This document shows positions 1,280 through 57,598 of a DNA stretch of 64,000 nucleotides, piece after piece; position 1 is the first letter of the stretch; every line of letters starts with the position of its first letter. The stretch comes from Scyliorhinus canicula (taxonomy: Eukaryota): positions 97,363,575-97,427,574 of the forward strand of contig NC_052164.1 in the NCBI RefSeq assembly GCF_902713615.1, given 5' to 3'. Made by a program: the position numbers and the translations under genes. The notes under the pieces are model-generated. The model was not told the DNA's origin and did not search any database. It saw nothing but the letters and a program-made list of their open reading frames with translations.

Positions 1280-1364
1280 GAACCGAAAGTAAATCGGTTT
1301 GGAGAACAAAGTTGGTTTCGTTTTCCGTCTCTGATCAGTGTCGGCAGGAATAGCCAAGCCGGAG
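1280..1364 (+). promoter_or_regulatory. Putative ISRE promoter and non-coding exon 1 of the 4381 gene
   Basis: IRF-like GAACCGAAAGT at 1280-1290 and ISRE GGTTTCGTTTTCC at 1314-1326. Inr-like TCAGT at 1335-1339, donor GAG|GTAAAG at 1364/1365, locally CpG-rich. Confidence 0.6.
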
Positions 1365-1594
1365 GTAAAGTGGGGTTTTCATTCTGAATTTTGGAAAGAG
1401 CTTTTAGGTGACTGTCGCTATTTTACACTGAGCGGGAAATCGACCCGTTTAAAGGTTGGCAGCGGTAAGGATGTTTAAATTCCCGGGTAGATGTGCTGAA
1501 TTGCAGAGAGTGGAAAATGGGATGTTGCAAATGCCACAGGAACCATTCGTTACCCCATCAGACAACACGTCTCACTGACTGAGGCTGAGAAAGT

Positions 1595-1620
1595 TGTGTG
1601 TGTGTGTGTGTGTGTGTGTG
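1595..1620. repeat. (TG)n microsatellite
   Basis: 13 TG units. Confidence 0.9.
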
Positions 1621-3580
1621 GCAGACATGGGCTATTTCTCAGACCCGCTCCTCTCTGAGAACTTTTGAACAACTTTCTGCAACTTCTTGTATCCAACCCG
1701 CCCGGGTTCCTGTCTGACGTTTTTGTTAATTTTGCTGGTTGATGCATTTGGGATAGTTAACTTGACTAACACGGGGGGGGGGAGGGGGGGGGGTAGGTTG
1801 TACTGAATTCTGCAGCACAGAAATAGGCCTGTTTGTGCTTCACTCCTCTCGGTCTCTCATCCACCCTATCAGCATATCCTTCTCTACCTTCTCCCCCTCT
1901 TGTACCTACCTGGATCCCACTGAAATTCACCTGTTTCCATTACTTCATCCATTCCTGGGGCAATGAGTTCCTCACCTCTCTTTGGAGTAAGGAGGTTTCT
2001 CCTGACTGAATTCCTTATTAACAGTGATCACCTTGAGGCTGCAGTTTTGTGCCCCTCTGGCCGTGCTTTCGACAGGGGAGGGCACGTAAAATAAGGTGGG
2101 TGCCAACTCCACCATCCTTCACCCACCCCCCAAACTTGTCCCCGTGATGCTTGGGATGAGTGGGAACTGAAATCCACAGCCCGCCTGCCCTATTCAAATA
2201 AATAATCAAGGGTCATTAAGCTTGTGAACAAGCCAATAGGCCGCGATAATACTCTGCCCACACCCAGCTGTGTACCCCTCTACCACGGCTGCATTCAGAG
2301 CCGGGTGCCCCTGGAGAGAGGGAGCATGATGTATCCACTGCTATCCTCAACACCACCTGTGCCCGTTTGGCCCCACAGGGGCTGGGCTGGGCTGCCTTAT
2401 CATAGAATCCCTGGGGCAGTATGGTGGTGCAGTGGTTAGCACTGCTGTCTCATGGCGCCAATTTCTCAGGTTCGGTCCCGGCTCTGGGTCACTGTCCGTG
2501 TGGAGTTTGCACATTCTCGCATGTTTGCGTGGGTTTCGCTCCCACAGCCCAAAGATGTGCAAGGTAGGTGGATTGGCCACGCTAAATTGCCGCTTAATTG
2601 GAAAAAATGAATTGGGTTCTCTAAATTTAAAAAATATCATAGAATCCTTACAGTGCCGAAGGAGGCCATTCAGCCCATCGAGTCTGCACCGATCCTCTGA
2701 AAGAGTACCCGACCTAGGCCCACTATCCCAGTAACCCCACCTAACCTTTTGGACACTATGGGGCAATTTAGCATGGCCAATCCACCTAACCTGCACATCT
2801 TTGGACTGTGGGAGGAAACCGGAGCACCCGGAGGAAACTGACGCAGACACGGGGAGAACGAGCAAACTCCCTACAGACAGTGACCCGAGGCCAGAATCTT
2901 CCGCACCTTTAGGGGCCAAACCCTCACATTGAGGGGCTAGGCCTGCGCCTGAGTGGTTCCCACTCCGCCGGCTGGCGTGAATGGCCTTTGGTGCCACGGC
3001 AGCCGGGGCCCAAAGGACTTCGCCAGCCGGCGTAAGTCCGCGCATGCGCGGCTGCAGACGTCATACCGGCACATGCGCAGAGGAGTGGGTCTCTTCCGCC
3101 TCCGCCATGGTGAAGACCATGGCGAAGGTGGAAGAAAAAAAGTGCCCCCACGGCACAGGCCCGCCGGCGATCGGTGGGCCCTGATTCTGGGTCAGGCCAC
3201 CGTGGGGGCACCCCCCGGGGTCAGAACGCCCCGCACAACCCCCAGAACCCCGGATCCCGCCCGCGCCGCCAATCCCACCAGTCATGTAGGTTGTTTACTC
3301 CACGCCGGCGGGAGAGGCCTGTCAGCGGTGGGACTTCGGCCCATTGCGGGCCGGAGAATCACTGCGGGGGGCCTGCCGACTGGCGCGGCGCGATTCCCGC
3401 CCCCGCAGAATCTCGGGGGGCGGACAATTCGGGACACGGCGGGGGCGGGATTGACGCCGGCCCCAGGCGATTCTCCGACCTCCCGCCTATTGTCTTCACC
3501 CTGTGTGAAGTACAGTATTGAGCATGCTCAATCTCTGACAGTGGAGTAATCCCAGGAGTTCAAATATTCACCAAAAAGGC

Positions 3581-4022
3581 AAAGAACAACAAAGAACAGC
3601 ACAGGAACAGGATCATGATGCCGGTATAAATTAAAACCTCTGCACTTCCGGGGTCTGTATCCCTCTATTCCCACCCTCCTCATATATTTGTCAAGGCACC
3701 TCTTAAACATCGCCATCATATCTGCTTCCACCGTATTCACCAGCAGCGAGTTCCAGGCACTTGCCACCCTCTGTGTAAAGAAACTTGCCTCGCACATCTC
3801 CTTTAAACTTTCCCCCTTCACCTTAAACCTATGTCGCCTGGTAATTGACTTCCACCCTCGGAAAAAGATCCTGACTATCCACTCTGTCCATGCCCTTCAT
3901 AATTTTGTAAACCTCCAACAGGTCACCCCCTCAACCTCCTTCATTCCAGCGAAAACAATCCGAGTTTGTCCAATCTCTCCTCATAGCTGATACGGTCCAG
4001 ACCAAGCAACATCCTGGTAAAG
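3581..4022 (-). mobile_element. CR1-type LINE 3' fragment
   Basis: FFTQRVASAWNSL...FKRCLDKYM is the CR1 ORF2 C-terminal motif. Confidence 0.75.
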
Positions 4023-4380
4023 CACTGGGACTAAAAGGATTAAATCAGGAGTGCAGGTTACACAGTCTAGACATGTATGGAATATTATGGAATGTTCTAA
4101 TCCTGCTGTTTAATGCAATTGAAGGATTTGAGAGGAAAGATAGATAGAAACAATTCCCTCACCTGGCGACAGTCGAGAACAAGGGTGCATGCTCCCCAAG
4201 GAAATCTAAAAGTATCTATTAATCTGTCAGTCAACCATAAATAAACCAATCACCTAGGCCAGGAGTTAAACATCAGCATCAGTGTACTTATGTCTGTGGC
4301 CGAGACCTTAGCAATACCATGTAAATGTTTTCCATTACAGGTCTCACGCGACTGCAGGAGAAGGTGATAAATACCAAAAA

Positions 4381-5022
4381 ATGTCCATTACATTTTACGG
4401 CTGGGAGGCCATCAATGAGGATAAAGGGCATCTGAAACCGGGGCAAAAGCTTCAAGATGGTAGAGGCTATACCATGTACCACGGGACCCACAAAAACAAT
4501 GCCGCAAAAATAATATGTTCAGGGTTTGTACCATCCGTAGATGGACTCCTGGGTCCAGGGGTATACATTAGCAGAGATAGGAATAAAGCAAGGGTGTACC
4601 CAAAGACAGTACCGAAAACTGACAGAGTGGTCTTCAAGCTGAAAGTTAGAGTTGGAAAAGTGAAGAAAATAGACAAGGATAACCATCCCCTGCAAAAAAC
4701 CTGGCATCAGCAAGGCTACGACTGTGCCTGGGTCCCACCAAATTGCGGGATGCAGTCCATTCCGAGTCAAAAAGAAGAAGACTGCGTCTGGGACCCCAAA
4801 CGGATAACGGTGGTGGATATCGCCTACGCAAATGACCTGGTCAAGAAAGATCTGAGGAAGCTGATAAGCGAACAGACGATGGCCAAGGAAGCGGATGTCA
4901 AGGATCAATGCAACGTCTGTGGCCACCGACAATATTCATCTCATGAAATTCAGAAATGCTGGGGTTGTGAGACGGTCGTCTGCCCTTTTATGAGCAAACA
5001 TGTTTGTAAAAAAGGGAGATAG
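4381..5022 (+). CDS. gig2: Gig2-like PARP-fold ADP-ribosyltransferase-domain protein, long type with C-terminal Cys/His finger (213 aa, single coding exon)
   Basis: Motifs YTMYHGT, GLLGPGVYISRD, ARVYP, VGKVKKID, HPLQKTW, GYDCAWVPP and EEDCVWDP are typical of Gig2. Splice acceptor tttccattacag ends at 4340; AATAAA at 5296-5301. Confidence 0.9.
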   Translation: MSITFYGWEAINEDKGHLKPGQKLQDGRGYTMYHGTHKNNAAKIICSGFVPSVDGLLGPGVYISRDRNKARVYPKTVPKTDRVVFKLKVRVGKVKKIDKDNHPLQKTWHQQGYDCAWVPPNCGMQSIPSQKEEDCVWDPKRITVVDIAYANDLVKKDLRKLISEQTMAKEADVKDQCNVCGHRQYSSHEIQKCWGCETVVCPFMSKHVCKKGR

Positions 5023-9376: not shown

Positions 9377-9931
9377 TGGGACATATTGGCAGGAAATCCT
9401 GCTTTTTACAATATATAACTAATTCTTAACTATGTTGCAAATTGTATCTAACTCTGCAGTTTGCTGTACTTTCCATGTCTGCTGCTGGAATAACAGCCCT
9501 GTGTGCAAAACAAATGACTCATCACCAGGTGCGTACTCAGAGACAATGGACTATTAACAAACTTTGCCCAAGGTCTGAATGCCTGAAGATATCCCTGCTC
9601 TGCCCAGCTAGCCACAAGCTGAAGAATTCACAACAACAGGAAAAGGCTGTAGATTACAAACTAGTAACCATTTATGGCATGGACTGAGATAATGGAGGAC
9701 TAATTAGTTGCATGTAATGAATTGTGATGCGAATAAAGGTGATTGGCTGTATGTAAATGAGATTACAAACTGATTTCGCTTTCGAATCTGTATATTAACC
9801 CGTGTGAACCTTAGCTCAAGTGAGAAGTCTAAAGGCTGCGGAGCCTCAGGCCTTTCTCCCAGAATTCTGATATAATAAACTGCTTCTTTGCTCATCAAAA
9901 GGCCTTCGTGTGAATATTTTCACCTATAACA
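9377..9931 (+). mobile_element. Probable solo LTR inserted into a SINE
   Basis: Interrupts the SINE sequence cattaacattg/caatgaagttactg. TG...CA termini with ATTG duplication; internal ATTGG, TATA-like and AATAAA motifs in LTR order. Left edge uncertain by a few bases. Confidence 0.55.
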
Positions 9932-11599
9932 ATTGCAATGAAGTTACTGTGAAAATCACCTCGTCGCCACATTCCAGGCACCTGTCCGGGGAGGCTGGTA
10001 CGGGAATTGAACCGTGCTGCTGGCCTGCTTTAAAAGCCAGCGATTTAGCCTGGTGAGCTAAACCAGCCACATGTAGGCCAGACTACACAAGGATGGTTGA
10101 TTTTCTCCCGTAAGGACATTCGTGAACATGATGAGTTTTTACAACGTTCCGGTAGTTTCGTGACCATTATTAAAGACACTCGCATTTTATTCCACATTTA
10201 TTCATGAAATTTAAATGCCCTCAAGGTGTGCTCAGATTTGAAATCAGCTCTGTGAAGCGTTAGGCCAGCCGCTGGATTACCAGTTCTGCAGCATTACCGC
10301 TATATCACTCTGCCCCTGTTTTCTTTCTCCCTCTCTGGCCAACCTTCTGCACACTGTGTCCGTAAGCACATGGATAGTGTGAGAAAATGCTCCGCAGTGG
10401 CCTGCAAGTGACCAGCTAAATCCAACAGGCATAGGGCCTCCAAGGATCAAACTTTATTTTATGATGAGTCAGTAAGATAAATGATAGAAGGGCTGGAATT
10501 TGGACATTCTGAATTCTCCCTGTGTACCCGAACAGGCGCCTGAATGTGGCGACGAGGAGATTTTCACAGTAACTTCATTGCAGTGTTAATGTGAGCCTAC
10601 TTGTGACAATAAAGATTATTATTAATTGGCCTCAGAACCTGTTGCAGAAAAGAGGGAAAGCTGGCTGGGGAAACTGCACATGAGTATGACTAGACCACCA
10701 TAATAATAATAATTGCTTATTGCCTCAAGTAAGCTTCAGTGAAGTTACTGTGAAAAGCCGCCAGTCACCACATTCTGGTGCCTGTTCAGGGAGGCCAATT
10801 AAACTCGCGCTGCTGGCTTGTTCTGCATTACAAGCCAGCTGTTTAGCCCACTGTGCTAAACCAGCACCATATATCAATCGCTATTGAAAACCCAAAGGCA
10901 GAAATAAGGCCAGAAATTTTCATTGGAGCAGAGAATGTTGAAAGATCTGACAGCAAGATTTCAAGGTGCTGAACTTTGGTCAGGATCTATAGTTGATGAG
11001 TTAACAAATGAAGGGCTTGAATTTAAGATCTTAGTATGAAGAGAGAAGTTGGGAAAAGTGTTTAAAAACGAAATGAGCAATATTTGAAGAAGAAAAGTAG
11101 ACAAAAGATGGGGCAGGGGAACATCACTTATTGGAATGTTGTTGAGAGCTGGCATTGTGCAGCGGGCCGAATGGTCTTCTGCATTGGAAAGATCAACCAT
11201 TCTGTATGCGGACAGTAAGTGTGGTCAGGATTATGAGCCTCATGCCCAACATTCCCATGAGCAGAAAACTGATCAACACTTAAGTCGAGCCTAGGGTGGG
11301 ATAAAATCCATATGGACAAGGCTATCGGTATCCATAGAGCAGAACCCCAGCAAAGAGTTAACAGCACCTTCAGCTGAAGGAGGGGACAAAATTAATAAGC
11401 AGGAAAATCCCTCTGCATATCTTGAGGGGTAGTCAAGCCCTTGGAGTTTGAGGGAAGGCGAAGGCAGATGTTGGGACCGAGATCCAAGTCTGCTATTAGC
11501 AGCCCTCCAGCTCCCACTTAGCTCCAGCCTCTTTGAATGCATGGCTGGGCTCTTTAAGCATCAGAACGAGGCAGGCATTTTTTTCTATTTTAGGATACT

Positions 11600-11709
11600 G
11601 AAATTGAAAGTTAAATATTGCTAGTGTGAGCGAAGTCTAAGTGCTTCTCTTTAAAAGGAATCTACTCTAACAAAGTTTTTTATCCACTAATACAATTCAA
11701 ATCAAGTGG
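11600..11709 (+). promoter_or_regulatory. Putative ISRE promoter and non-coding exon 1 of the 14196 gene
   Basis: GAAATTGAAAGT at 11600-11611, TATA-like TTTAAAAG at 11650-11657, donor TGG|GTGAGT at 11709/11710. Confidence 0.55.
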
Positions 11710-12150
11710 GTGAGTATACTGATATTTTAAATATCAATATTTTACACTGTTTACTGATTGGTGTCTGAAAGCTGTGGCCACTGCAGACATGTATGATTAC
11801 TTCCTGATATTTCCTTCATTGCAGCTGCTTGATGTACATGTTTTACCGTTCAATACATGGAATCATTTTGTGTTTTGTTTTCTAAGTGTTGCACAGGTGC
11901 TGATTTAGTGCATAAATATTCTGAACAGGGGCTTAACAAACCAGGAAGTATCAGGTAAAATTCCCCACCGTGTTGAGTGATCTACTCTAACTGGGGTGGG
12001 GCTACAATCAGTCACGGTGCCCAGACAAGACAAACAATCAGGCTTTTTGTTCCCGATTATGATCCTGAGGAGTTTCCTGACAAAATGCAATGATCAGATG
12101 AAACCAAGAACCGGTTTTGTAATGATGATCTGAACAGTTGAATATCTTAC

Positions 12151-12793
12151 TGATGTGTTGGGTACTCTGGATCTGTGGAGACTGCGTTTACCTCAGCAGT
12201 AACATAGACAGGCTACCAACACTTGTAGAAGTACAACTCTATTTTATTTAACTACGAGCTGTTAAACATACTTGCACTGTGGGTTGACACTATGTTAGGT
12301 TTTTTTTTTAAATTTAGAGAACCCAATTATTTTTTCCAATTAAGGGGCAATTTAGAGTGGCCAATCTACCTATCCTGCACATCTTTGGGTTGTGGGGGTG
12401 AAACCCACGCAGACACGGGGAGAATGTGCAAACTCCACACGGACAGTGACCCAGGGCCGGGATTCGAACCCGGGTCCTCAGCGCCGTAGGCAGCAATGCT
12501 AACCACTGTGCCACCGTGCTGCCCTACACTATGTTAGGTTGACTGAAGACCTATGGCTAACCTGACCAGCCTATACTGCTAGCACATGGTAGATGTTTGT
12601 GCTACTGACTGCGGGCTCTGTCTGTCTCAGAGGCTGCATCCCGAATGAGCGGGAAAACTAGTGCCCTCTGGCTTTATAGTGACCGTGCCCAATCTGGTGA
12701 TTGGCTGCTGTGTTGTGTGTGTTGATTGGTCTTGCAGTGTGTCAGTCAGTGTGTGTCTATGCACCATCATATACTTATGTGTATATTATGACA
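12151..12793 (-). mobile_element. LTR-like element containing a nested HE1 SINE (12302-12525)
   Basis: TG...CA ends, but no clear TSD for the outer element. The nested SINE has a 15-bp TSD ACACTATGTTAGGTT (12287-12301, 12526-12540). Confidence 0.55.
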
Positions 12794-12949
12794 CTGGTAA
12801 TCATTGTGGAGGGTGAGTAGGTTTGACAGCCGGGAAATAGTACCCTGGCTTCAATCAACAAGTGCAACTGGAGAGAAATTTATGCAGCTAATTAGCTAGT
12901 AACCCAGCAATATAAATATTCTCGAGGAATTGCAGAGTGTTTCAGTAGA

Positions 12950-12980
12950 ATCGCTTCTCGCCCTTTTGGCTAAGATCAAG
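12950..12980 (+). pseudogene. 3'-truncated (tailless) U2 snRNA retropseudogene
   Basis: ATCGCTTCTCGCCCTTTTGGCTAAGATCAAG matches the U2 5' end with one mismatch. Flanked by a 19-bp TSD at 12931-12949 and 12981-12999 (one mismatch). Confidence 0.88.
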
Positions 12981-14195
12981 TGCAGAGTTTTTCAGTAGAG
13001 AAAGCAGCTTCTTGACCCATCGTGCCTCTTTCAGCATCTTGAAAGAGATTTCCAGACAGTCTCAAGCCCCATTCTATTCTAAAAGCCCTGCAAATGTTTC
13101 CCTTTCAATTACATATCAAAACTCTTTTTTAGAGTTAGTATTATTGAATCTCTTTTCAACACTCTTCCAGGCAGTATATTAATGACTGCTCACTACATAC
13201 AGATACCTCCTCATTTTCCCTCAGATTATTTTGACCGTTGCCAACTCTCCAACAGTGGAAACCTTGGGCGGGATTTCCGTTCCCCGAAGCCGATTTTGTA
13301 ATTGACGATCGGGAGAAGAATCCCTTTTGACGGTGAAATCGGGGACGGCACCTGTTTAATGCAGGTTTTGTATGCTCCGCCTCCTCCCAAACGGCATCGT
13401 CAAGTCGCGCGCCACACGCCACTGAGACAGCCTCTGATGGGCCGAGTTCCTGACGGCACGGTTCACTTCTGGTCTCAGCCGTCTGATTGGGATGCTAGGT
13501 AATGACGTGCTACATGGCCCGTCAACCCATGGGAATCCACTTGGGATGTGCGAAGTGCTCACTGAACCACGATTACCAATTTCCGCTAAGCAATTGCCTT
13601 CAGCTGTACGGCCAGAGGCCTCGGCAGTTGGCGGGGCTCATGGGTGGTCGGCTGGGGCGGACAGACAAAAACAAGCGTTTCCCCTGGAACAGGTACACAC
13701 GATCCAGGAGTTGGCTGATGGTGCCGCGAGCGGTTGCCTCTTGGATTCCCCCCCCAGCGCCCCCCAAAACCTCCCATGGTGGTCCACCCCTAGCCGACCG
13801 TCCAACACCCCCCCCATCAAGCACTGGGGCGGCAAGCCCAGCTCCCCCGGGTTCTTTGCTTGTGAGCAAAGATGCCTCACACAGCCACAGGCATGTACCT
13901 GATCACACACATCAATTTTTACAAGTAATGTTTCTAACATGCACATTTAGCATTGTAATTCATACAGACATTCACAAACAAGCTACATACACAACATGAG
14001 AGTGTTCACAGCATCACATAACAATCTTTTTACATGCACATGTACCCTACCCTTTTTAGAGTAGATTTTATCCAAATTATACAATTGTAAGATCAAGAAA
14101 TCTTCAAGGTGATATATCTGTTCAATTTTACAGTTGAATTTATTTTTGTTTTCTTCGTTACAGGTCCCTATTGAGCAGTCAGAACAAGTGGCGAG

Positions 14196-14843
14196 ATGGC
14201 GTTGACATTTTTTGGATGGGAGACTATTTATGACAATAATCATCATTTGCTGTCAAATCAGGAACCGAAGAATGGGACAGAATACATCATGTACCATGGC
14301 ACCACAGTCAGTAATGCAAGGTCTATCATACAAACAGGCTTCAGGCAATCAAGCAAGGGCATGCTAGGCCCTGGAGTCTATATTAGCAGAGACAAAGAGA
14401 AAGCTAAGAGGTATCCAATTAGTAGTCCAAGCGATAGAGTAATCTTAGTGTTAAAAGTACAAGTCGGAAAGGTCAAGATAATAGATAAAGAAAATCATCC
14501 TATGGCAAAGACTTGGTATCAACAGGGGTATGATACAGCTTGGGTCCCTCCCAACTGTGGGATGAGAAATGTTCCCAGTGGATTGGAGGAAGACTGTGTT
14601 TGGGATCCACAAAGAATCCGGGTAGTCGATGTAATAAATTCCCCCAATCCGGGAACAACACAGCAGTTGAAAGATTTGCTTCAAGCAAGATCGTACAGTA
14701 ACCCTGCGCCTGAGTCAGAGACAGCTGAGCACTGCGGTGTCTGTAAAAGCACCATGGCGCCTCCTCACCTGTTGCAGACCTGCTGGGGGTGTGGACAGAC
14801 CATCTGCCCTTTTATGGGAAGTCATTTCTGCGAGTCGAATTGA
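14196..14843 (+). CDS. gig2: Gig2-like ADP-ribosyltransferase-domain protein, long type with C-terminal Cys/His finger (215 aa)
   Basis: Motifs YIMYHGT, GMLGPGVYISRD, AKRYP, GYDTAWVPP and GLEEDCVWDP. Acceptor ttttcttcgttacag ends at 14163. Confidence 0.9.
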   Translation: MALTFFGWETIYDNNHHLLSNQEPKNGTEYIMYHGTTVSNARSIIQTGFRQSSKGMLGPGVYISRDKEKAKRYPISSPSDRVILVLKVQVGKVKIIDKENHPMAKTWYQQGYDTAWVPPNCGMRNVPSGLEEDCVWDPQRIRVVDVINSPNPGTTQQLKDLLQARSYSNPAPESETAEHCGVCKSTMAPPHLLQTCWGCGQTICPFMGSHFCESN

Positions 14844-27622: not shown

Positions 27623-27657
<35 letters not shown>

Positions 27658-34783: not shown

Positions 34784-34863
34784 GAAACTGAAACTTTGAA
34801 AATTACATTATAAAGACCAGCTGTGTGCACATCTCACTGCAGAGGTACTAACCGAGCAGTGAG
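34784..34863 (+). promoter_or_regulatory. ISRE-TATA promoter and non-coding exon 1 of the 38938 gene
   Basis: GAAACTGAAACT at 34784-34795, TATAAAG at 34809-34815, Inr-like TCACT with its A at 34836, donor GAG|GTGAGT at 34863/34864. Confidence 0.75.
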
Positions 34864-36611: not shown

Positions 36612-36919
36612 TGATGGAACCATCAATTCACTAGACACGTGCTTTAAGATATGAACAGTGGTTTTAATCGACTTACAACAGAGCCAGCCTGTTCCGCGTT
36701 GAACTCTCGATGAACTGAACGACTGGCTCTGAGCATTGGTATTTATACAGCCGTCCAGGGGGAGGAGTCGTGGGCGGAGCCAAGGGTGGACCCCTGTACA
36801 AACGCCTAAGCATTCCCAGCGCTACTCCCCCTAGTTGTCGGGCAACGCAACTGCGCTTACAAATGCATGTTCTCATGTATATACAATACAGTGTGAATTA
36901 CGGAGTTACATTCACCACA
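36612..36919 (-). mobile_element. Solo LTR (308 bp)
   Basis: TG...CA termini and 5-bp TSD GTCGG (36607-36611, 36920-36924). Paralogous units show the empty site (~25136, ~44329). Confidence 0.8.
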
Positions 36920-38937
36920 GTCGGAATTTTCCACCGGTGGGATTTTACCCGACCGCTGAAGTCAATGGAGGTCGGAAATCTCCAGACGTTGGAATTCTCT
37001 GTTCCCGCCGGCAGTGCCCACCCATACACGGGTTTCCAGGTGATGTGGCGCGGCTTCAATGGGAAATCTCATTGACAAGCAGTGGGAAGAGAGAATCCCG
37101 CCGTTACTGAACGGTGGACCTCCGAGAAACACACGGCTGGGCGACCGGGGAATCTGGATTTTTCAATGGCTCGCCGCATTTTCCAATCCATGATGGGGCT
37201 ATAAAATTCAGCCCCGAATACCAATCACGTCACCGTTGACGGTTCATTTGTCACTTTCTAATCCATTTTTAGCTGCTCCTCCCCACCCCAAATGATCATG
37301 GTTAATTTCATTCTTTGAGGGTTGTTTTCAAGCTTTGTGCAGCCTGTAAAAAAAGGTAAGCATTTTCTCTGTTAGTCCAAAGGAATGTCCTCTCAACCTG
37401 AGCAATGCTTTCTTCCTGCTGTTTTCTGGTGAGTGTCAGGAGGTTGGAAATTGACGTACAACAGGTTGGTGAAACTACATTTAGATTGTTGCGTGAAATC
37501 TTGAGTGTTTTTAGTGAATTTTACCAAGGGACAAGGAAGAATTTGAATGGAAAATACCTACTTTTCACTTATAATTATTGACTTAACAATTGGAATGTCG
37601 AGCTTCAAAATTGTGTATTCTGAGAAATTTCACCTCATTATTACAAAGACAATTTAAACATATTCTTCTACAAAGGAAAGACTGAAATCGCTAGTCATAA
37701 TTAAATTAAATATATTCATTTATGTCGACCTTTCACAACAGCTGGACCTGTCAAAGCACTTTCCAGTTAATTAAGTACTTTTGAAATGTAGTCACTGTTA
37801 AAATATACAAAATGTGGCTGCCAATTTGCGTGTAGCAAACTCCAGCAACGTGACAACGACCTGGTAACCTGTTTCTGTGATGTTGGTTGAGTGATAAATA
37901 TTGCTGCTGATGGTCAAGAATGTATCACGATGCCTCGAACAGCTTCATAATGCTTAAGATTATTTCCTTTATTTCCCTCCAATTGTGTTTAATCTAAGGG
38001 TGCTGGCAGCCCTCACCCTAATCCCCTGCATAACCGTTCTTTATATGTGAGCTATAGCGGCGGGTGCCAGGTAGGATATTCTACTACTGGGGCATCACCA
38101 TTAAACCAAATCCTGTCTTTACTCTATATTCATGGCAGGATGGGCTTTTCAGCAAGTGATTGAGAGCAGAGATTGCAGATCAGGGGTTATGGGGAGAAGG
38201 AAGGAGAATGGGGATGAGAAAATATCAGCCATGATTGAATGGCGGAGCAGACTCGATGGGCCGAATGGCCTAATTCTGCTCCTATGTCTTATGGTTTTAC
38301 GGTTTCATCCATGTTGTTTGAGATTATCAAAAATAAGAGTAGCGTCCCACCGGTGTAATTAAGTTTCTTAATTCAGCACAATTGTGGTATTTTGGGGAGA
38401 AAAAAGACAGTTACACATAGAACAGTACAGCACAGAACAGGCCCTTCGGCCCTCGATGTTGTGCCGAGCAATGATCACCCCACTTAACCCACGTAACCTG
38501 TATACCCGTAACCCAACAATCCCCCCATTAACCTTACACTACGGGCAATTTAGCATGGCCAATCCACCTAACCTGCACATCTTTGGACTGTGGGAGGAAA
38601 CCAGAGCACCCGGAGGAAACCCACGCACACATGGGGAGGACGTGCAGACTCCACACAGACAGTGACCCAGCTGGGAATCGAACCTGGGACCCTGGAGCTG
38701 TGAAGCATTGTTGCTAACCACCATGCTACCGTGATGCCACTAAAGGCATTGCTTAATTCAGCACAATTGTGGGGTCAAATCCACGTTCTATGTCAGTGCA
38801 TTTTCAAGTATAAGGGTTATGAGAGGCCCTAACAATGTGAAATTGCTGAAGATTTGCAACTGAATTAAAAATTTATTTTCTGCTTTAAATTTTCTTTCTT
38901 TTGTTCAAGGTCAAGTTGACAAGTTGTCCGGGTTACC

Positions 38938-39432
38938 ATGGCTGATTACAGAAATATTTGGGCTGAAGAGGATGGACCTGGTTTTGTTCCAATACAACTT
39001 CAAAGTTGTACAGCACCACGAGATGACAAGATCTATGTGATGTACCATGGAACCCGTGCCAGTGATGTCGATTCCATTCGCAAAAATGGTTTCCAACGAT
39101 CCAAGGATGGCATGCTGGGCCCTGGAGTCTATGTCAGTAGAGACATTAGGAAAGCCAGCAGGTATCCACTGAATCTGCATGACAGTCAGAAGGCTGTGCT
39201 TAAGTTAAGGGTAAATGTGGGAAAAGTCAAAAAGATTGATCGTCAAGGACACCCATATCAGAAGACATGGCGTAGTCATGGCTACGACACTGCCTGGTGT
39301 CCTCCCAATTGTGGGATGGTACCAAGTGGGCTGGAGGAAGATTGTGTCTCAAATCCTACCAGAATAAAAGTTGTTGAAGTCCTTCACCCAAAAGCTTGTG
39401 GGGACCCCTGGGACTACCCTGAAGAGTACTGA
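38938..39432 (+). CDS. gig2: Gig2-like protein, short type (164 aa), intact
   Basis: Motifs YVMYHGT, GMLGPGVYVSRD, ASRYP, GYDTAWCPP and GLEEDC. Acceptor AG at 38908-38909, strong Kozak accATGg, AATAAA at 40042-40047. Confidence 0.9.
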   Translation: MADYRNIWAEEDGPGFVPIQLQSCTAPRDDKIYVMYHGTRASDVDSIRKNGFQRSKDGMLGPGVYVSRDIRKASRYPLNLHDSQKAVLKLRVNVGKVKKIDRQGHPYQKTWRSHGYDTAWCPPNCGMVPSGLEEDCVSNPTRIKVVEVLHPKACGDPWDYPEEY

Positions 39433-42054: not shown

Positions 42055-42164
42055 ATCCATTGACACAGTTAACTAACAAAAATCTACTTCAATCTTGTAA
42101 GCTCCACTTAGAGTTTGATCAGTGAACTGATCGAGGTGTTTAAAATCTTAAAATAAATTGTTAG

Positions 42165-42398: not shown

Positions 42399-42682
42399 AA
42401 ATTGTTAGGTTCGATGAATGTTGAAAGAAACTAATAAGAATGTTGAAAACGTGAAGGACAGAGAATATTTATATTGAATATTGTCACAAATAGGCATGTC
42501 TCCCTCTTCTGACGGATCGCTGGCAAAAAGTGAGGGGTCGTGATAGGGTTTCCTTAAAATTTATTAAACTGTTAAAAATGTTAAGGGTGTGGTACTTGAT
42601 TAGCAGCACCTCCATTTGATTGTCCCTCAATTGTTTCGATTCAAGGATGCTTTCGACAACGTAACGCTGTTTTGAGGGAATT

Positions 42683-42768
42683 GAAACTGAAACTTTGAAA
42701 ATTACATTATAAAGACCAGCTGTGTGCACATCTCACTGCAGAGTTACTAGCTGAGGGGCAAGATGAGT
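42683..42768 (+). promoter_or_regulatory. Orphan ISRE-TATA promoter with mutated splice donor; its unit has no coding exon
   Basis: GAAACTGAAACT at 42683-42694, TATAAAG at 42708-42714. Donor reads AAG|ATGAGT (G>A at 42763). Confidence 0.7.
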
Positions 42769-45700
42769 GCGTGAACTCCCTAAAGTTCTGTTCCTGATAA
42801 ATTGTAAAAGAACTGGAAGGGACTTGTAGAAAATATTTCTTCCTGCAGCGAGTGCACTGCCAGAAGGAACAGTGAAAGCAGATTCAATAACTTTAAAAAA
42901 GAAATTATTAAATATTTGAATTGAAAAAGGATGCAGGCCTGTGAGGAAAAGGAAAGGAGTGGTATCAATTGGATAGTTTGCTCAAAGCCTGTTTCTGTGC
43001 TGTTAATTCTAAGATTTACTGATAGTGTTGTTGTATAATGCAGTCAACCCCATCTGGAATAGTGTGTGGTGTTTTGTTAATTTGACAATAACGAGAAAAG
43101 AGCAACAAAAGTAATTATGTCCCCTGGAATTTAAACAGCTAAGAAAGTTACCCATCTTTGTGCTGAGAGAACTTAAGTCCTCAAGTTCATGAAATGGTTT
43201 GAGGAGTTTCCGTAGGTCAATTGTTCCGCATGGTGAAGGATCATAAATTTAAAATAAGAAAGTTCAGAGGAAGATATGCAGATAACAGGTATCACGGTGG
43301 AGCAGTGGTTAGCACTGTTGCTTCACAGCTCCAGGGTCCCAGGTTCGATTCCCCACTGGGTCACTGTCTGTGCGGAGTCTGCACGTTCTCTCCATGTCTG
43401 CGTGTGCTTCCTCCGGGTGCTCCGGTTTCCTCCCACAGTCCAAAGATGTGCAGATTAGGTGGATTGGCCATGCTAAATTGCCCTTAGTGTCCAGGGATGT
43501 ACAAGTTAGGTTATGGAGTTATGTGGATAAGGAGGGGGTGGATGGGCGAGTGGACATGGGTCGGTGCTGACTTGATGGGCTGAATGGCCTCCTTCTGAAC
43601 TGTAGAGATTCTATGATATCAATTTTTCAGACTAACGATGGTCATTGTGAGATTTGTTACCAGAGAAGGCACTGAATAGAAGAGAGAGAAGTGACTGAAA
43701 GATGTGGCTGAAATGTTGGTAGTTTGGTTTAATCCCTGAGAAAACATTTAGTTATTGATGATGGTAGGTGGGATTCTCCATCCCGCTGCACCTGTTCCCT
43801 GGGGTGATCTGCCCCCCCGCCTGCAGCGGGAACCACCGTTCCGGCAGCTGGCCAATGGGGTTTTCCACTGTGGGCACTCCAATGCCGTCGGGAAATCCAC
43901 GGGAGTGAGCGCGCTGCCGGCAAAACGGAGGATCCCGCCGACGGAGAATCCATCCCAGTGTTTTTATTTTTCCCTTCCAGCTCATAATTGTGAACACAGA
44001 CTTGCAGCCAATGTTCCTTCAATTGCTTTTGTGTATGGTCTATTTATTGCACCATGTGGTGGGCGTTGGTTGACTGAGCATTTATGCATCAAAACGAATG
44101 TTGCATAACCTGTTGGTAGTTGCTATTAAACTTTATTTGATACAGTTTTTGCATTTCCTAGTTTTACATTCCCGTTAGAATAGGGACGAGTATGAAGTTG
44201 GCTGTGCAATGAGTGCAACATCTTACAAACTTGGTGCAATCATTATTCAGGACAGGTGTTGTGAGGCAAGCTAGACTTCAAAGGCAGCTAAACTGTAAAT
44301 CACAGTGAGTCACCACTTGCAAATAATTGTCGGAACTTTCCACTGGTGGGAGTTTACGCTCCCGCTGAAGTCAATGGCGGCTGGAATTCTCCGGACGTTG
44401 GGATCTTCTTTTGCCGCCGGCAGCGCCCACCCATACACGGGTTTCCAGGCAAGCATGGGGTTGGCTTCATTGGAAAATCTCATTGGCAAGCGGCTGGAGT
44501 AGAGAATCCCGCCGTCAGCGAACGGCGCGCCTCCAAGAAACACACAGCCGGGCAACCGGACAATCTGGATTTTCCAATGGTTCGCCGCATTTTCCAATCC
44601 AACTTCCCTCCATGGCGAGACTGTAAAATTCAGCCCGGAATACCAATCAGGTCACTTTTGACGGTTTATTTGTAAAGGGCTGGTTAAGCACACTGGGCTA
44701 AATCGCTGGCTTATAAAGCAGATCAAGCAGGCCAGCAGCACGGTCCGATTCTCGTACCAGCCTCCCCGGACAGGCGCCGGAATGTGGCGACTAGGGGCTT
44801 TTCACAGTAACTTCATTGAAGCCTACTTGTGACAATAAGCGATTTTCATTCCAACACCACTAGGGCTATGTTGTGAAAACTCGGAAGAAGATGACATTTG
44901 AAACATTAAAGTAACACTGAGAATGCCTGAGGCTTTTTAAATGAAAGGGAGAAGTCCCACAAGGGGTTAACAGCAGCAGCCTGTTTTGAAAGCAGACAAC
45001 TTCACAGACAGGGAAGAAAACAGATAGGAAAAGAAAAAAGTTAGAAAAGTCATTTGTTTGACTTAAACTCTTAAAGTTATATGAAAGGGAACAGTATTTC
45101 ACTAATCTTTAAGCAATGAATTATTTTTGAACAATTAAGAAAAGCAGCCAGAATCTAAAGTATAAGATAAGGAACAACTGTTAAGTGTGAAAAGTTGCTG
45201 ACACTGGTAATAAAGTGAAACAACTGATTTACAAATTAAGAAAACGAGAAGGTGACAAAGTTACACTATAACGTATATCATTTTTGAAGTTAAAACCTTT
45301 TAGAAGATGGCCAAAGCAGATAAAGTTAGAGACAAGAGGGGATAACCCTAACGTGACAGTAGCTTAACCCAAAGATGACCCGGGTTGAATCTGAGAAAAC
45401 CCATTAAAAAGGACATAAATCCAAAAGGGTGCTGTATAAGACACAGACAAATTAATTACATGTTAAGCAAAGCGAGAAAGTTCCAGTCAGGAATGGAGAG
45501 CTGGTGAGCATGAAGCTGCACTGTCGCTGTTAAAGTAGCGCCACGCTTCTAAACCGATAAAACTTAGCTTTCAAACGGTCAAGCAGGCAGTCTGAAGGGT
45601 GTCAGGTGCACAGGTTAAGGGGCCCTAAATTGCCATAGAAACTGGGGAAAATGAGCAGATAATCAGAATCTTCCTCGGTGATGGGACAAGCAACATCGAC

Positions 45701-46876: not shown

Positions 46877-47241
46877 ATTATGTTGGAGCTGTTTATTACA
46901 ACTATACCAGTCTGTTGTGGACAATGTCTGGCCAAAGGATCAGGGATCAGTGTTGCCATCATTGGCTCTTTAATCCCAATTTCTGATTATTTAATTGGTC
47001 AAATACAAATAAAAAAACATTTCAGTCAATGGGAAGAAAAAAGAATGCTGACAAAGTGAAGGACAGAGAGTACTGGCATATCTCCCCCATCTGACAGATT
47101 GCTGGCAGGAAGTGGGGGGTTTCTGTAAAATTTATTAAACTTGTTAAAACATGTGAAGGGTGCGGAACTTGCTTTGCATCTCCACCCTTTGACCGTCCCT
47201 CAAGGATGTTATCGACTACGTAACGGTCTTTTGGAGGAATT

Positions 47242-47321
47242 GAAACTGAAACTTTGAACATTAGGTTATAAAGTCCAGATGTGTGCATATCTCACTGCAG
47301 TGTCACAGATCGAGGGGAGAG
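47242..47321 (+). promoter_or_regulatory. ISRE-TATA promoter and non-coding exon 1 of the 50488 gene
   Basis: GAAACTGAAACT at 47242-47253, TATAAAG at 47267-47273, Inr A at 47294, donor GAG|GTGAGT at 47321/47322. Confidence 0.75.
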
Positions 47322-48671
47322 GTGAGTGCGTGAACTCCCTACATTTCAGTTCCTGATAAACTATGAAAGAACTAAAAGGGAGATATAGAAAACAGTTTTT
47401 CCTGCAGTGAGTGCTGTGCCAGAAAGAACGGTGAAAGCAGATTTAATAACTTTCAAAAGGAAATTATTAAATATTTGAAATACAAAAGAGTGCAGCACTG
47501 TGAGGAAAAAGAAGGGAGTGGCATTATTGGATCGTTCGTTCAAAGCCTGTTTCTGTGCTGTTAATTCTAAGATTTACTGATAGTGTTGTTGTATAATGCA
47601 ATCGACCCCATCTGGAATAGTGTGTGGTGTTTTGTTAACTTGATAATATCGAGAGAAGAGCAACAAAGGGAATTATGTCCCCTGGGATTAAAACAGCTAA
47701 GAAAGTTACCCATCTTTGTGCTGAGAGAATTGAAGTCTTCAATTCATGAAACGGTGTGAGGAGTTTCTGTAGCTCAATTGTCCCGCATGGTGAAGGATTA
47801 TGAATTTAAAATGAGGAAGTTCAGAGGAATTGTGAGATATCACGGAGGTGCAGTGGTTAGCACTGTTGCCTCACAACGCAAGGACCCGGGTTTGATTCCG
47901 GCCTTGGGTGATTGTCTGTGTGAAGTTTGCACGTTCTCTCCGTGTGTGCATGGATTTCCTCCGGGTGCTCCGGTTTCGTTCCACAGTTCAAAGGTGGGTA
48001 CGTGAGGTGGATTGGCCATGTTAAAATGACCCTTAGTGTCCAGGGATGTGCAGGTTAGGTTATGGAGTTACGGGGATAAGGAGGGGTGGATAGGCGTGTG
48101 GACATGGGTCGGTGCTAACTTGATGAGTGAATAACTTCCGTCTGAACTATCGAGATTCTATATCAGTATTTCAGACTAACGATGGTCATTGTGAGATTAG
48201 TTACCAGGGAAGGCACTGAATGTAAGAGAGAGAAGTGACTCAGAGATATGGTTAAAAGGTTGATAGCTGGGTTTAATCCATGAGAAAACATTTATTTATT
48301 GGTGGTGGTGTCTTTATTTCTCTACTCCAGATAACAGTTTAAATACAGCCAATGTTCTTTCAATTGTTTTTGTGGTTTATTTATTGCATCAGGTGGTGGG
48401 CTGAGCATTTATGCATCTCTGGGATGTTGCATACCTGTTGGGTCCACTGCAAAGAACATTTCGGATTGCTGTGCGCACACATGGTTTAGAGGGAACATTG
48501 TTCATAGTATTGAACTCAGTTTCCTGTTCGAAATATTACGGAGGTTAATCTTTATACTTGTACATTTTGAAGTTATGCTGTGCTATACTTCACAGCGCCA
48601 GGATCCCAGGTTCAATTCCCGGCTTGGGTCACTATCTGTGCGGAGTCTATATGTTCTCCCCGTGTCTGCGT

Positions 48672-48702
<31 letters not shown>

Positions 48703-50487
48703 ACAAGTCCCAAAAGACGCGTTTGTTTGGTGAATTAGACATTCTGAATTCTTCCTCTGTGCACCTGAATGTGGTGACTCGGGGCTTTTCACAGTAACTT
48801 CATTGCATTGTTAATGTAAGCCTACTTGTGACAATAATAAAGATTATTCTTATTATTATGGCAGTTGCTATTAAACTTTCCGTGATATAGTTTTTGCATT
48901 TCCTAATTTTGCATTCCCGTTAGAATAGGGACGAGTATGAAGTTGGCTGTGCAATGAGTGCAACATCTTACAAACTTGGTGTAATCATTATTAAGGACAA
49001 GTGTTGTGAGGCAAGCTAGACTTCAAAGGCAGCTAAACTGTAAATCATAGAGAGTCACCACTTGCAAATAATGTCAGAACTTTCCACGGGTGGGGTTTTA
49101 CGCTCCCGCTGAAGTCAATGGAGGCTGGAATTCTCCGGCTGTTGGGATTCTCTGTTCCCGCCACTCACGGGGATAAGTGGCGGGAAGAGAGGATCCCGCC
49201 GTTACTGAACGGTGGACCTCTGAGAATAGTGACTTAATCAGTGATTAACAATTGGAATATCAAGCTTCAAAACTGCGTATTCTGAGAAATTTCTCCTCAT
49301 TATTACAAAGACAATTTAAACATATTCTTCTGCAGAGGAAAGACTGAAATCGCGTGTCATAGTTAAATGAAATATATTAATTTATGTCAGCCTTTCACAA
49401 CAGCTGGACCTGTCAAAGTACTTTCCAGTTAATTAGGTACTTTTGAAATGTAGTCACTGTTAAAATATACAAAATGTGGCTGCCAATTTGCGTGTAGCAA
49501 ACTCCAGCAAGGTAACAACCACCTGATAACCTGTTTCTGTGATGTTGGTTGAGTGATAAATATTGCTGCTGATGGTCGGGAATGTATCACGATGCCTCGA
49601 ACAGCTTCTTAATGCTGTCGGTCATTTCCTTTATTTCCCTCCAATTGTGTTTAATCCAAGGGTGCTGGCAGCCCTCACCCTAATCCCCTCCGTGCTCATT
49701 CTTTATATGTGAGCTATAGCGACGAGTGCCAGGTAGGATATTCTGCTACTGGGGCCTCACAATTAAACCGAATCCTGTCTTTACTCGATATTCATGCCAG
49801 GAAGTGCTTTTCAGCAAGTGATCGAAAGCAGAGATTGCAGGAGATCAGAGGTTATAGGGAGAAGGCAGGAGAATGGGGATGAGAAAATATCAGCCACGAT
49901 TGAATGGCGGGGCAGACTTATCATGGAATTTACAGTGCAGAAGGAGGCCATTCATTGATGGGCCAAATGACCTAATTCTGCTCCTATCTCTTATGGTCTT
50001 ACTGTTTCATCCTTATTGTTAGAGATGAGCAAAAATAAGAGTAGCATCCCACCGATGCAGTTAAGTTTCTTAATTCAGCACAATTTTGGGATCAAAACCA
50101 GGGGCTAGTTTAGCACAGTGGGCTAAACAGCTGGCTTGTAATGCAGAACAAGGCCAGCAGCGCAGGTTCAATTCTTGTACCAGCCTCCCCGAACATGCGC
50201 CAAAATGTGGTGTGTAGGGGCTTTTCATAGTAATTTCATTGAAGCCTCATGTGAGGATAAGTGATTATTATTATTAATTTTATTATTTTAAAATCCACGC
50301 TCTATGTCTGTGCACTTTTAAGTGTAAGTGTCATTGGAGGAGTTCACCAGTGAGCACTAATAGCATCAGGGAAATGTACAGCAATATCAAATTGTGGAAA
50401 ATTCAATACAGAATTAAAAATGTATTTTCTGCATTTAAGTTTTCTTTCCTTTGTTCAAGGTCAAGTTGACAAGTTGACTGGATTACC

Positions 50488-50982
50488 ATGGCTGATTACA
50501 GAAATATTTGGGCTGAAGAGGATGGACCTGGTTTTGTTCCAACAAAACTTCAAAGTTGTATAGCACCACAAGATGACAAGATCTATGTGATGTACCATGG
50601 AACCCGTGCCAGTGATGTCGATTCCATTCGCAAAAATGGTTTCCAACGATCCAAGGATGGCATGCTGGGCCCTGGAGTCTATGTCAGTAGAGACATTAGG
50701 AAAGCCAGCAGATATCCACTGGATCTGCGTGACAGTCAGAAGGCTGTGCTTAAGTTAAGAGTGAATGTGGGAAAAGTCATAAAGATAAATTATCAACGAC
50801 ACCCATATCAGAAGACATGGCGTAGTCATGGCTACGACACTGCCTGGTGTCCTCCCAATTGTGGGATGGTACCAAGTGGGCTGGAGGAAGATTGTGTCTC
50901 AAATCCGACCAGAATAAAAGTTCTTGAAGTCCTTCGCCCAAAAGCTTGGGGGGACCCCTGGGCCTACCCTGATGAGTACTGA
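50488..50982 (+). CDS. gig2: Gig2-like protein, short type (164 aa), intact, apparently chimeric
   Basis: Same motifs as the 38938 gene. Acceptor AG at 50458-50459, AATAAA at 51585-51590. Confidence 0.9.
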   Translation: MADYRNIWAEEDGPGFVPTKLQSCIAPQDDKIYVMYHGTRASDVDSIRKNGFQRSKDGMLGPGVYVSRDIRKASRYPLDLRDSQKAVLKLRVNVGKVIKINYQRHPYQKTWRSHGYDTAWCPPNCGMVPSGLEEDCVSNPTRIKVLEVLRPKAWGDPWAYPDEY

Positions 50983-55658: not shown

Positions 55659-56985
55659 TGTTGTGAAAACTCGGAAGGATATGACATTTGAAACATGAAA
55701 GTAACACTGAGAATGCCTGAGGCTTTTTAAATGAAAGGGAGAAGTCCCACAAGGGGTTAACAGCAGCAGCCTGTTTTGAAAGCAGACAACTTCACAGACA
55801 GGGAAGAAAACAGATAGGAGCTTCATTTTAATTTACAAGTTAGAAAAGTCATTTGTTTGACTTAAACTCTTAAAGTTATATGGAAGGGAACAGTATTTCA
55901 CTAATCTTTAAGCAATGAATTATTTTTGAACAATTAAGAAAAGCAGCCAGAATCTAAAGTATAAGATAAGGAACAACTGTTAAGTGTGAAAAGTTGCTGA
56001 CACTGGTAATAAAGTGAAACAACTGATTTACAAATTAAGAAAACGAGAAGGTGACAAAGTTACACTATAACGTCTATCATTTTTGAAGTTAAAACCTTTT
56101 AGAAGATGGCCAAGGCAGATAAAGTTAGAGACAAGAGGGGATAACCCTAACATGACAGTAGCTTAACCCAAAGATGACCCGGGTTGAATCTGAGAAAACC
56201 CATTAAAAAGGACATAAATCCAAAAGGGTGCTGTCTAAGACACAGACAAATTAATTGCATGTTAAGCAAAGCGAGAAAGTTCCAGTCAGGAATGGAGAGC
56301 TGGTGAGGATGAAGCTGCACTGTCGCTGTTAAAGTAGCGCCACGCTTCTAAACCGATAAAACTTAGCTTTCAAACGGTCAAGCAGGCAGTCTGAAGGGTG
56401 TCAGGTGCACAGGTTAAGGGGCCCCAAATTGCTATAGAAACTGGGGAAAATGAGCAGATAATCAGAATCTTCCTCGGTGATGGGACAAGCAACATCGACA
56501 GACCGAGCAGCCCAGAGAAGCGAGCAGGAAACCAAAAGTTAAAGAAAACTGATTGTCAAGAGAGACGTGAAAGTCTGCAACTGGTCCGAACAAGAAAAGA
56601 TCTTTTTACCTTTCTGTAAAAGTACTTATTCTCTTTTGACTTGAACATAAAGTTAAGTTCAAATTGATAACGTGAAAGAGTGGTCATTATAATTTTCTTT
56701 AGAAAGTTTACTTTACTTCACTTAGCAAGCCGGACCCGTGTGTAAGTTACTAAGTGCTAAGTAAATAAAATTCTTCTATGAACATACAGGTTATGCCGGG
56801 GAATAACTTGAAACACTAGTTTTACCCGAATAGCACCCGCCGAAGTCTGCGTAGGAGTTAGGGAGTGAGAATCCCTGCTCACCATCTAGAATAAATTGAC
56901 CCTTTTTGGTCTGGGGGAATTGTAAGAATAGTGGTGGTGTCAATATCTGTAAGGCATTGGGAGAAGGTGTTAGACTAACAAACAG
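55659..56985. repeat. AT-rich LTR-like or unclassified segment, duplicated at 44869-45991
   Basis: Begins TGTTGTGAAAAC right after the Harbinger remnant. A near-identical ~1.1 kb copy lies 10.8 kb upstream. Confidence 0.45.
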
Positions 56986-57518
56986 TGTTGGCTCCCACCC
57001 CGGGCACCTCCCCCAATCACCCCCCCCCCCCCCCCCCCCCCCCCCGGCCCCCCCACTCCCAACACTAGACGCGGGTCTAGATTTTGGCTTCCCGCTATTC
57101 AGCAGCCTCGTTCCGTTTGAGCGAGATTGCTATGAGGCCGGAGAATCGCGCCCATTATGTTGGAGCTGTTTATTACAACTATACCAGTCTGTTGTGGACA
57201 ATGTCTGGCCAAAGGATCAGGGATCAGTGTTGCCATCATTGGCTCTTTAATCCCAATTTCTGATTATTTTATTGGTCAAATACAAATAAAAAAACATTTC
57301 AGTCAATGAAAAGAAAAAAGAATGCTGACAAAGTGAAGGACAGAGAGTACTGGCATATCTCCCCTATCTGTCGGATTGCTGGCAGGAAGTGGGGGGTTTC
57401 TGTAAAATTTATTAAACTTGTTAAAACATGTGAAGGGTGCGGAACTTGCTTTGCATCTCCACCATTCAACCGTACCTCAAGGATGTTATCGACTACGTAA
57501 CGGTCTTTTGGAGGAATT

Positions 57519-57598
57519 GAAACTGAAACTTTGAACATTAGGTTATAAAGTCCAGATGTGTGCATATCTCACTGCAGTGTCACAGATCGAGGGGAGAG
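57519..57598 (+). promoter_or_regulatory. ISRE-TATA promoter and non-coding exon 1 of the 60765 gene
   Basis: GAAACTGAAACT at 57519-57530, TATAAAG at 57544-57550, Inr A at 57571, donor GAG|GTGAGT at 57598/57599. Confidence 0.75.

Follow-up and report, generated by a model that had tools for sequence, protein, structure and literature searches.

Predicted interferon-responsive promoters and very short non-coding first exons in a Gig2 gene cluster of the catshark Scyliorhinus canicula

A stretch of 64,000 nucleotides from the genome of the catshark Scyliorhinus canicula (NC_052164.1, positions 97,363,575 to 97,427,574 of the forward strand; hereafter the window, numbered from its first letter) contains Gig2 genes (GCRV-induced gene 2, PARP-like) clustered in tandem. 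Five of the genes are intact, two longer (A and B) and three shorter (S1, S2 and S3), and the motifs upstream of them make it probable that each is a two-exon, interferon-inducible unit of its own, with a promoter that carries an ISRE (interferon-stimulated response element) and a tiny non-coding exon 1. An earlier note on this DNA had placed the true promoters 2.5-4.2 kb upstream of the open reading frames (ORFs), and that placement is now supported by promoter modules shared with other species, by the gene models of other sharks and by the known layout of zebrafish gig2i. The features are collected in Table 1.

The predicted promoters of the short genes share a single arrangement of motifs. 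The exact 12-mer GAAACTGAAACT occurs on the plus strand at 34784, 42683, 47242 and 57519, against a chance expectation of 0.57 matches in the window even when one mismatch is allowed. When these four units are aligned, TATAAAG begins 25 nt past the start of GAAACTGAAACT in every one of them, exactly as the earlier note had described, and is followed by TCACTGCAG. Three of the four then carry a 5' splice site (donor) of the form GAG/GTGAGT, where the slash marks the exon boundary, 80 nt past the start of the 12-mer. The copy at 42683 reads AAG/ATGAGT at this point and has lost its donor, since the GT is changed to AT; the note had already picked out this mutation. The three remaining donors, at 34864, 47322 and 57599, each score 11.5 on a simple matrix for 5' splice sites, and a score of 11 or above is attained by just 8 of the 3697 GT sites in the window. 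The corresponding acceptors, at 38910, 50460 and 60737, each follow a pyrimidine tract and lie 28 nt ahead of an ATG. Exon 1 of the short genes contains no ATG, and their leader ends in ACCATGG. We also scanned the window with the fish ISRE consensus DGAAANNGAAASH, as used in the zebrafish DreI paper, and obtained 8 matches where 1.31 were expected. Six of these are the sites that the earlier note had named as ISREs, and each of the six is followed, at a distance of 38-110 nt, by a predicted exon 1 donor. Every element named in that note is present where it had been placed.

Genes A and B have upstream sequences that differ from those of the short genes, and no homology was found among the A, B and short-gene promoters; yet they follow the same logic, as had been claimed for them. 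ISREs are present at 1314 and 11599 and GT donors at 1365 and 11710, which, together with the donors at 34864, 47322 and 57599, give all five genes a two-exon layout at the level of sequence. The acceptors of A and B, at 4341 and 14164, again have pyrimidine tracts. The 5' end of exon 1 of gene A is uncertain (~1337-1346), which corresponds to an exon of 19-28 nt.

The coding parts of the five units are plainly those of Gig2 genes. Five intact plus-strand ORFs (A, 4381-5022, 213 aa; B, 14196-14843, 215 aa; S1-S3, 164 aa each) match PF00644, the PARP catalytic-like domain, above its gathering score, each of them being a small protein (~150-220 aa) with a PARP-like domain, as defines the family. 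A homologue search with the ORFs of the window returned 539 matches at E<=0.001, including named Gig2 proteins of non-amniotes. Named homologues with 56-69% identity include the zebrafish Gig2-like proteins DreI and DreL, a crucian carp interferon-inducible protein and the gig2o and gig2p proteins of sharks and rays, and the closest named proteins, with ~90% identity, are those of S. torazame. Both long ORFs occur exactly in assembly GCA_902713615.2, and in the catshark's own protein records A and B are two distinct entries, of 213 and 215 aa. For the three 164-aa short proteins, exact look-ups in the searched protein collection gave no record, and two further homologue searches gave no catshark models; our literature search found no paper on catshark Gig2 and nothing on its transcripts. 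All five ORFs are uninterrupted, placing the whole coding sequence (CDS) of each gene in one exon, with an acceptor 28-40 nt before the ATG. Each unit also has its own stop codon and poly(A) signals, that of S1 lying ~610 nt past the stop.

The short-gene module was then compared with Gig2 loci from three other elasmobranch orders, represented by the skate Rhinoraja longicauda, the whale shark Rhincodon typus and the sevengill shark Heptranchias perlo. In Heptranchias, modules at 31243 and 38558 consist of the ISRE GAAACTGAAAC followed by an AATAAAG box, with CACTGCAGAG kept and a donor at +80 that scores 11.5. The Rhincodon module, at 1557, has GGGAAACCGAAACT, TATAAAA at +25 and a donor at +75 whose score of 11.7 is the best of any GT in its contig. 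Rhinoraja has modules at 6879 and 19771 with donors at +74 (score 10.2, reached by just 3 of the 1070 GT sites of the locus). In all three species the modules stand 2.3-3.1 kb upstream of a short Gig2 exon preceded by an acceptor, except for that at Rhinoraja 19771, whose downstream gene would fall past the end of the compared locus. A composite pattern of the module, written after the fact from these same sequences, matches only module sites (3 in the window and 2/1/2 in the Rhinoraja, Rhincodon and Heptranchias loci), with zero chance matches expected in the window. Alignment of the catshark units to the Rhinoraja locus by BLAST gave no other non-coding match except one likely transposon fragment. 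The persistence of the module in the skate is therefore not simply slow drift, since only coding sequence and this fragment otherwise align.

This comparison also bears on where transcription would begin. The start was placed from the TATA spacing, and the earlier note had put it at TCACT, giving an exon 1 of 28 nt. The predicted donor end of that exon is supported, but its length may differ: the CA within GCAG is the one CA dinucleotide kept in all four lineages, 21-23 nt ahead of the donor and 27-32 nt past the start of the TATA box. Both starts fit the initiator consensus, and because of the conservation of the GCAG CA we regard a start there, and thus an exon of 23 nt, as the more likely of the two. 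For S1, the alternatives correspond to 28 nt from A34836 and 23 nt from the conserved CA at 34841.

The long genes were compared with those of Heptranchias, whose non-coding DNA is collinear with that of the catshark at ~65-70% identity. The ISRE of gene B sits in a block of 23 bases that does not differ between the two species and forms the identity peak of a 700-nt comparison (0.87-0.90 vs 0.62 overall). The TATA-like box keeps 10 of its 11 columns, and the donor GGTGAG is kept after an 8-nt insertion. At gene A, 12 of the 13 bases of the ISRE are kept, as is the GAG/GTAA donor, and the block GGAACCGAAAGTAAAT upstream is unchanged. Exon 1 of A is surrounded by other blocks shared with Heptranchias, at 1283-1294, 1381-1410 and 1437-1462. 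The first of these lies upstream and contains GAAAGTAAA; the other two fall within the first 100 nt of the intron, and one of these reads TTCTGAATTTTGGAAAG, loosely like a STAT or GAS site.

Gene models from other sharks, which are themselves predictions made by others, place introns where the earlier note had predicted them. For gene A, a partial S. torazame protein starts PSLR/FHLTAGEGDKYQKM (PSLR/FHLTAGEG). The catshark sequence spliced from 1364 to 4341 would translate as PSRR/SHATAGEGDKYQK (PSRR/SHATAGEG), whereas the unspliced sequence gives FHYR. The S. torazame model spans 5280 bp for a CDS of 693 nt, and so has an intron of ~4.6 kb. We discarded a rival gene A donor, the GT at 1465 (score 8.2), because it is not conserved in Heptranchias and yields GWQR, not the PSxR of S. 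torazame. For gene B, a Mustelus model contains RILKLKVKYC...SLKGI...QFKSSR/TLCDS...GEM, which is the translated B promoter and exon 1; its CDS exon ends (QFKSSR/) at the orthologue of 11709 and is joined to the leader of exon 2. For the short genes, a Carcharodon model contains ELKLKLRKLSYK...AELLTALRE/VCLFTM, the short-gene module read as codons, and its exon ends 3-4 codons past AELLT, where the catshark donor lies. A skate Logan contig that we also considered proved to be genomic and unspliced, and was uninformative.

Taken together, these results are consistent with a simple mode of expression. Following the sensing of interferon or virus, ISGF3 or IRF factors would bind the ISRE, ~45-55 nt upstream of the start. 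The short genes and B have a TATA or TATA-like box ~27-32 nt upstream of the start; gene A has none. Transcription would begin only ~19-28 nt ahead of the 5' splice site, giving a very short non-coding exon 1, and an intron of 2.5-4.0 kb within the 5' untranslated region (UTR) would then be spliced out. Exon 2 would supply a leader of 28-40 nt, the whole CDS and a 3'UTR with its own poly(A) signal. What we observed are the motifs, their spacing, the splice-site sequences, their conservation in the three other elasmobranch orders and their agreement with the gene models; the exact starts, the use of these junctions in catshark RNA and the interferon inducibility of the genes are inferences.

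Several observations weigh against two-exon units of this kind. First exons of 19-28 nt are unusually short, and the donor of gene A at 1365 is only moderate (score 6.6). The short-gene modules are young paralogous copies, so that their four identical motifs count as one observation and comparison within the window cannot show function. Indeed, conservation among the paralogues, which we tried as a footprint, was uninformative: promoter identity (0.82-0.88) is not above that of the intron (0.85-0.97; 35047-35366), and the 23-base invariant block with the ISRE is the third-longest invariant run, the two longer ones being intronic. The Heptranchias footprint is likewise weakened, because the slow evolution of shark non-coding DNA lets the flanks align at ~65-70%. 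When the interval 38650-39432, of which 67% is exon 2, was sampled as words, 35-42% of them were present in small RNA-like contig sets from six studies and 38-87% in DNA sets; the searches gave such shares of words and no junctions. The share of 35-42% would fit an exon 2 expressed free of its neighbouring intron, but proves nothing. Finally, in six other sharks the units are linked by RefSeq-type models into a single protein of several domains.

These chained models (617-905 aa, from S. torazame, Mustelus, Cetorhinus, Carcharodon, Heptranchias and Chiloscyllium) join A-, B- and at least one short-type domain. They raise the alternative of a single long gig2o gene with several domains, of which each unit would be an exon and whose transcription would start upstream of A; the modules would then be internal exons or at most alternative internal promoters, and the donors would serve read-through splicing. 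The linker in the Carcharodon and Mustelus models is indeed translated promoter module, with ELKLKL being the ISRE read as codons, and Gig2 proteins with more than one domain occur commonly among bony fishes and amphibians. We nevertheless consider a single gene unlikely. Every A and B ORF stops at a conserved position in both catshark and Heptranchias DNA, poly(A) signals follow each unit, stop codons interrupt the catshark frames across the modules, and a TATA box at the canonical distance fits a promoter, not an internal exon. The linkers themselves vary widely between the six models, from ~6 to 78 residues, and also in sequence; one linker exon in Heptranchias is transposon-like, and the A-to-B join there has no GT at the implied donor. 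The catshark's own records, as noted above, keep A and B apart. The fused shark gig2o models are likely to be over-merged, or else to represent read-through transcripts, and read-through chimeras may occur as minor products.

Two other explanations are weaker than that of a single gene. The motifs might be inherited passengers with no promoter role, retained in young duplicates and slowly evolving shark DNA, with transcription starting elsewhere, for example near the coding exons. The lack of any excess of promoter over intron identity among the paralogues, the two longer intronic runs and the wide alignment of catshark and Heptranchias intergenic DNA are all in keeping with this. However, the order and spacing of the module are kept in the skate, where almost nothing else non-coding aligns, the ISRE is a local identity peak at gene B, and the donors are among the very best GT sites of each locus and are used by gene models. 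Moreover, a strong acceptor stands ahead of each coding exon, and therefore an upstream exon is required. We regard passenger motifs as quite improbable. The remaining explanation concerns gene B only, whose working promoter could be an ISRE-like site at 9774-9783, with a donor-like GT at 9820, or an intronic ISRE at 13095-13107, and not the site at 11599. The former reads GAAAGCGAAA on the minus strand, and the GT at 9820 scores 7.5; the latter is kept in Heptranchias with 25 of the 26 surrounding bases. Against this, the site at 9774 fails the stricter fish consensus, has no TATA box, is not homologous to the A promoter and is covered by no blastn match to the Heptranchias locus, and we rejected it. 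The 13095 site has no usable downstream donor (best score 2.8). At 11599, by comparison, the ISRE, TATA-like box and donor are all conserved and the donor is used in the Mustelus model, and a displaced B promoter seems to us to have very little chance of being correct. Separate two-exon units, each with its own ISRE promoter, thus remain the reading that we prefer.

The strict ISRE at 13095-13107 lies on the minus strand, within the 5'UTR intron of B and ~1.07 kb ahead of the acceptor, and has its counterpart at position 17415 of the Heptranchias locus; it may be an intronic enhancer. Between B and the first short-type unit, an intergenic block at 21930-22040 is conserved with positions 28490-28620 of the Heptranchias locus. 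Within it, the minus strand has a strict ISRE, GAAAGTGAAAC, at 21970-21982, and 21946-21957 is another ISRE-like site. No good donor was found near these ISREs, and the block may act as an enhancer or as the promoter of some unannotated feature.

The array also contains incomplete copies. One is the truncated duplicate at ~42493-44418 with the orphan module at 42683: it stops within the intron, having only part of this besides the promoter and exon 1, and a protein-versus-window search found no coding exon downstream of the module. The same type of search revealed a sixth short Gig2 coding exon (28435-28740 + 30806-31006), split after about residue 101 by an insertion at 28741-30805 that carries reverse-transcriptase-like ORFs on the minus strand. 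Homology to the intron extends from 23810 in this broken unit, but no ISRE, TATA or exon 1 module was found there, and the unit at 28435-31006 is probably a dead copy.

Among the intact short genes, S2 and S3 are 98% identical over an aligned 1.75 kb, whereas the S1 and S3 types are ~76% identical. The promoter and intron of S2 (47242-50982) are ~96-98% identical to those of S3, while its protein is nearer to that of S1 (90.9% vs 85.4%); this mixture of an S3-like promoter and intron with an S1-like protein suggests gene conversion or unequal exchange within the array. Around 230-440 nt into the short-gene intron (35090-35143 and 35167-35301) lie the two longest runs invariant in all four paralogues, of 26 and 27 nt, and the same region includes a 138-nt block with 77.5% identity to the whale shark locus at 1977-2113. 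The intron block at 35090-35301 could have a regulatory role close to the promoter, or be used as an alternative exon. Additionally, a local k-mer check identified 36183-36219 as the C/T/G-rich part of a dispersed repeat with a copy in the intron of every Gig2 unit; its copies lie near 2838, 12410, 20396, 42267, 48653, 58931 and 62758.

Table 1. Predicted and observed features of the Gig2 cluster, in positions of the window
Feature	Positions	Strand	Details
ISRE of gene A	1314-1326	-	GGAAAACGAAACC; TATA-less promoter
Predicted non-coding exon 1 of A	1337-1364	+	donor GGAG/GTAAAG at 1365
Predicted 5'UTR intron of A	1365-4340	+	2976 nt; donor and acceptor sequences present
Exon 2 of A	4341-5022	+	40-nt leader; CDS 4381-5022 (213 aa); PARP-like Gig2 with Cys/His tail
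ISRE of gene B	11599-11611	+	TGAAATTGAAAGT
TATA-like box of gene B	11650-11658	+	TTTAAAAGG
Predicted non-coding exon 1 of B	11681-11709	+	~24-29 nt; donor GTGG/GTGAGT at 11710, score 8.6
Predicted 5'UTR intron of B	11710-14163	+	2454 nt; contains second conserved ISRE
Exon 2 of B	14164-14843	+	32-nt leader; CDS 14196-14843 (215 aa)
ISRE of S1	34783-34795	+	TGAAACTGAAACT
TATA box of S1	34809-34815	+	TATAAAG
Predicted non-coding exon 1 of S1	34836-34863	+	donor GAG/GTGAGT at 34864
Predicted 5'UTR intron of S1	34864-38909	+	4046 nt; contains repeat part 36183-36219
Exon 2 of S1	38910-39432	+	28-nt leader; Kozak ACCATGG; CDS 38938-39432 (164 aa)
Orphan module copy	42682-42764	+	ISRE, TATA and initiator intact; donor GT changed to AT at 42763
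S2 module	47241-47321	+	ISRE 47241-47253; TATA 47267-47273; predicted exon 1 end 47321
Predicted 5'UTR intron of S2	47322-50459	+	3138 nt
Exon 2 of S2	50460-50982	+	CDS 50488-50982 (164 aa)
S3 module	57518-57598	+	ISRE 57518-57530; TATA 57544-57550; predicted exon 1 end 57598
Predicted 5'UTR intron of S3	57599-60736	+	3138 nt
Exon 2 of S3	60737-61259	+	CDS 60765-61259 (164 aa)

The promoters of mammalian interferon-stimulated genes (ISGs) such as ISG15 and IFIT2 have an ISRE of the form GGAAANNGAAACT within ~100 bp of the start, and the whale shark copy, GGGAAACCGAAACT, can be likened to this canonical form. Non-coding first exons as short as these are not known to be general among ISGs. Mammals are without Gig2 genes, and in sharks and rays the family was previously known only from expressed sequence tags (PMC3617106).

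In zebrafish gig2i (DreI), the start site, a 70-nt exon 1 and a 319-bp 5'UTR intron have been described, together with a TATA box and an ISRE that spans -48 to -39, and mutation of the ISRE abolished induction by poly I:C, interferon and virus (PMC3296712). Re-reading the zebrafish DNA, we found AGAAACTGAAAGC, a GAG/GTAAGC donor 118 nt downstream of it and an intron that measures exactly 319 bp, with the ATG lying 13 nt past the acceptor. The catshark genes thus resemble a member of their own family in having the ISRE core GAAACTGAAA ~40-50 nt upstream of the predicted start, a TATA or TATA-like box (except in gene A), a predicted non-coding exon 1, a predicted GT-AG intron in the 5'UTR and an ATG soon after the acceptor. 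They differ in their predicted exon 1 of 19-28 nt and predicted introns of 2.5-4.0 kb. Flounder Gig2 genes, and the antifreeze genes derived from Gig2, have a non-coding exon 1 of ~44 bp (PMC9122973), and share with the predicted catshark structures two exons, a short non-coding first exon and a start codon in exon 2. These are, however, teleost loci for which no ISRE analysis was reported (PMC9122973), and their exon 1 is not alignable to that of the shark. Atlantic salmon has tandem gig2 paralogues, most of them with ISREs within 2 kb of the start, whose copies share promoter elements (bioRxiv 10.1101/2025.07.01.662619). The catshark likewise has tandem Gig2 paralogues with ISREs near the predicted start sites. 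In the salmon work, which covered no cartilaginous fish, the presence of an ISRE was not predictive of the response of every paralogue (bioRxiv 10.1101/2025.07.01.662619). The catshark layout is therefore not new for the family, and is distinguished from known members by its longer introns and shorter predicted exon 1. To a specialist it will be unsurprising, the bony-fish relatives having the same known layout, and we consider it a solid but expected finding.

These results would supply the right structures for the genes of a cluster in which the short ones lack an exact entry in the searched protein collection. In six other sharks, automated models chain the units, in at least two cases with promoter DNA translated as a linker. 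The results also delimit predicted promoter fragments that could be used to report interferon responses in sharks, a group for which, to our knowledge, few such tools exist. A more speculative interpretation, to which we attach a low probability, is that the ISRE, TATA box and micro-exon form an ancient module of fixed geometry that has been retained from before the split of sharks and rays, perhaps from the common ancestor with bony fishes. Its capped leader of ~20-28 nt and cap-proximal donor would then themselves be constrained, for instance if interferon-driven initiation were coupled to expression that depends on splicing, and the same DNA would also act in some sharks as a coding linker exon of a read-through multi-domain Gig2. 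More generally, the Gig2 layout of an ISRE and a non-coding exon, experimentally tested only in zebrafish, is here extended to cartilaginous fishes, and this therefore suggests that the wiring of Gig2 to interferon predates the split between cartilaginous and bony fishes.

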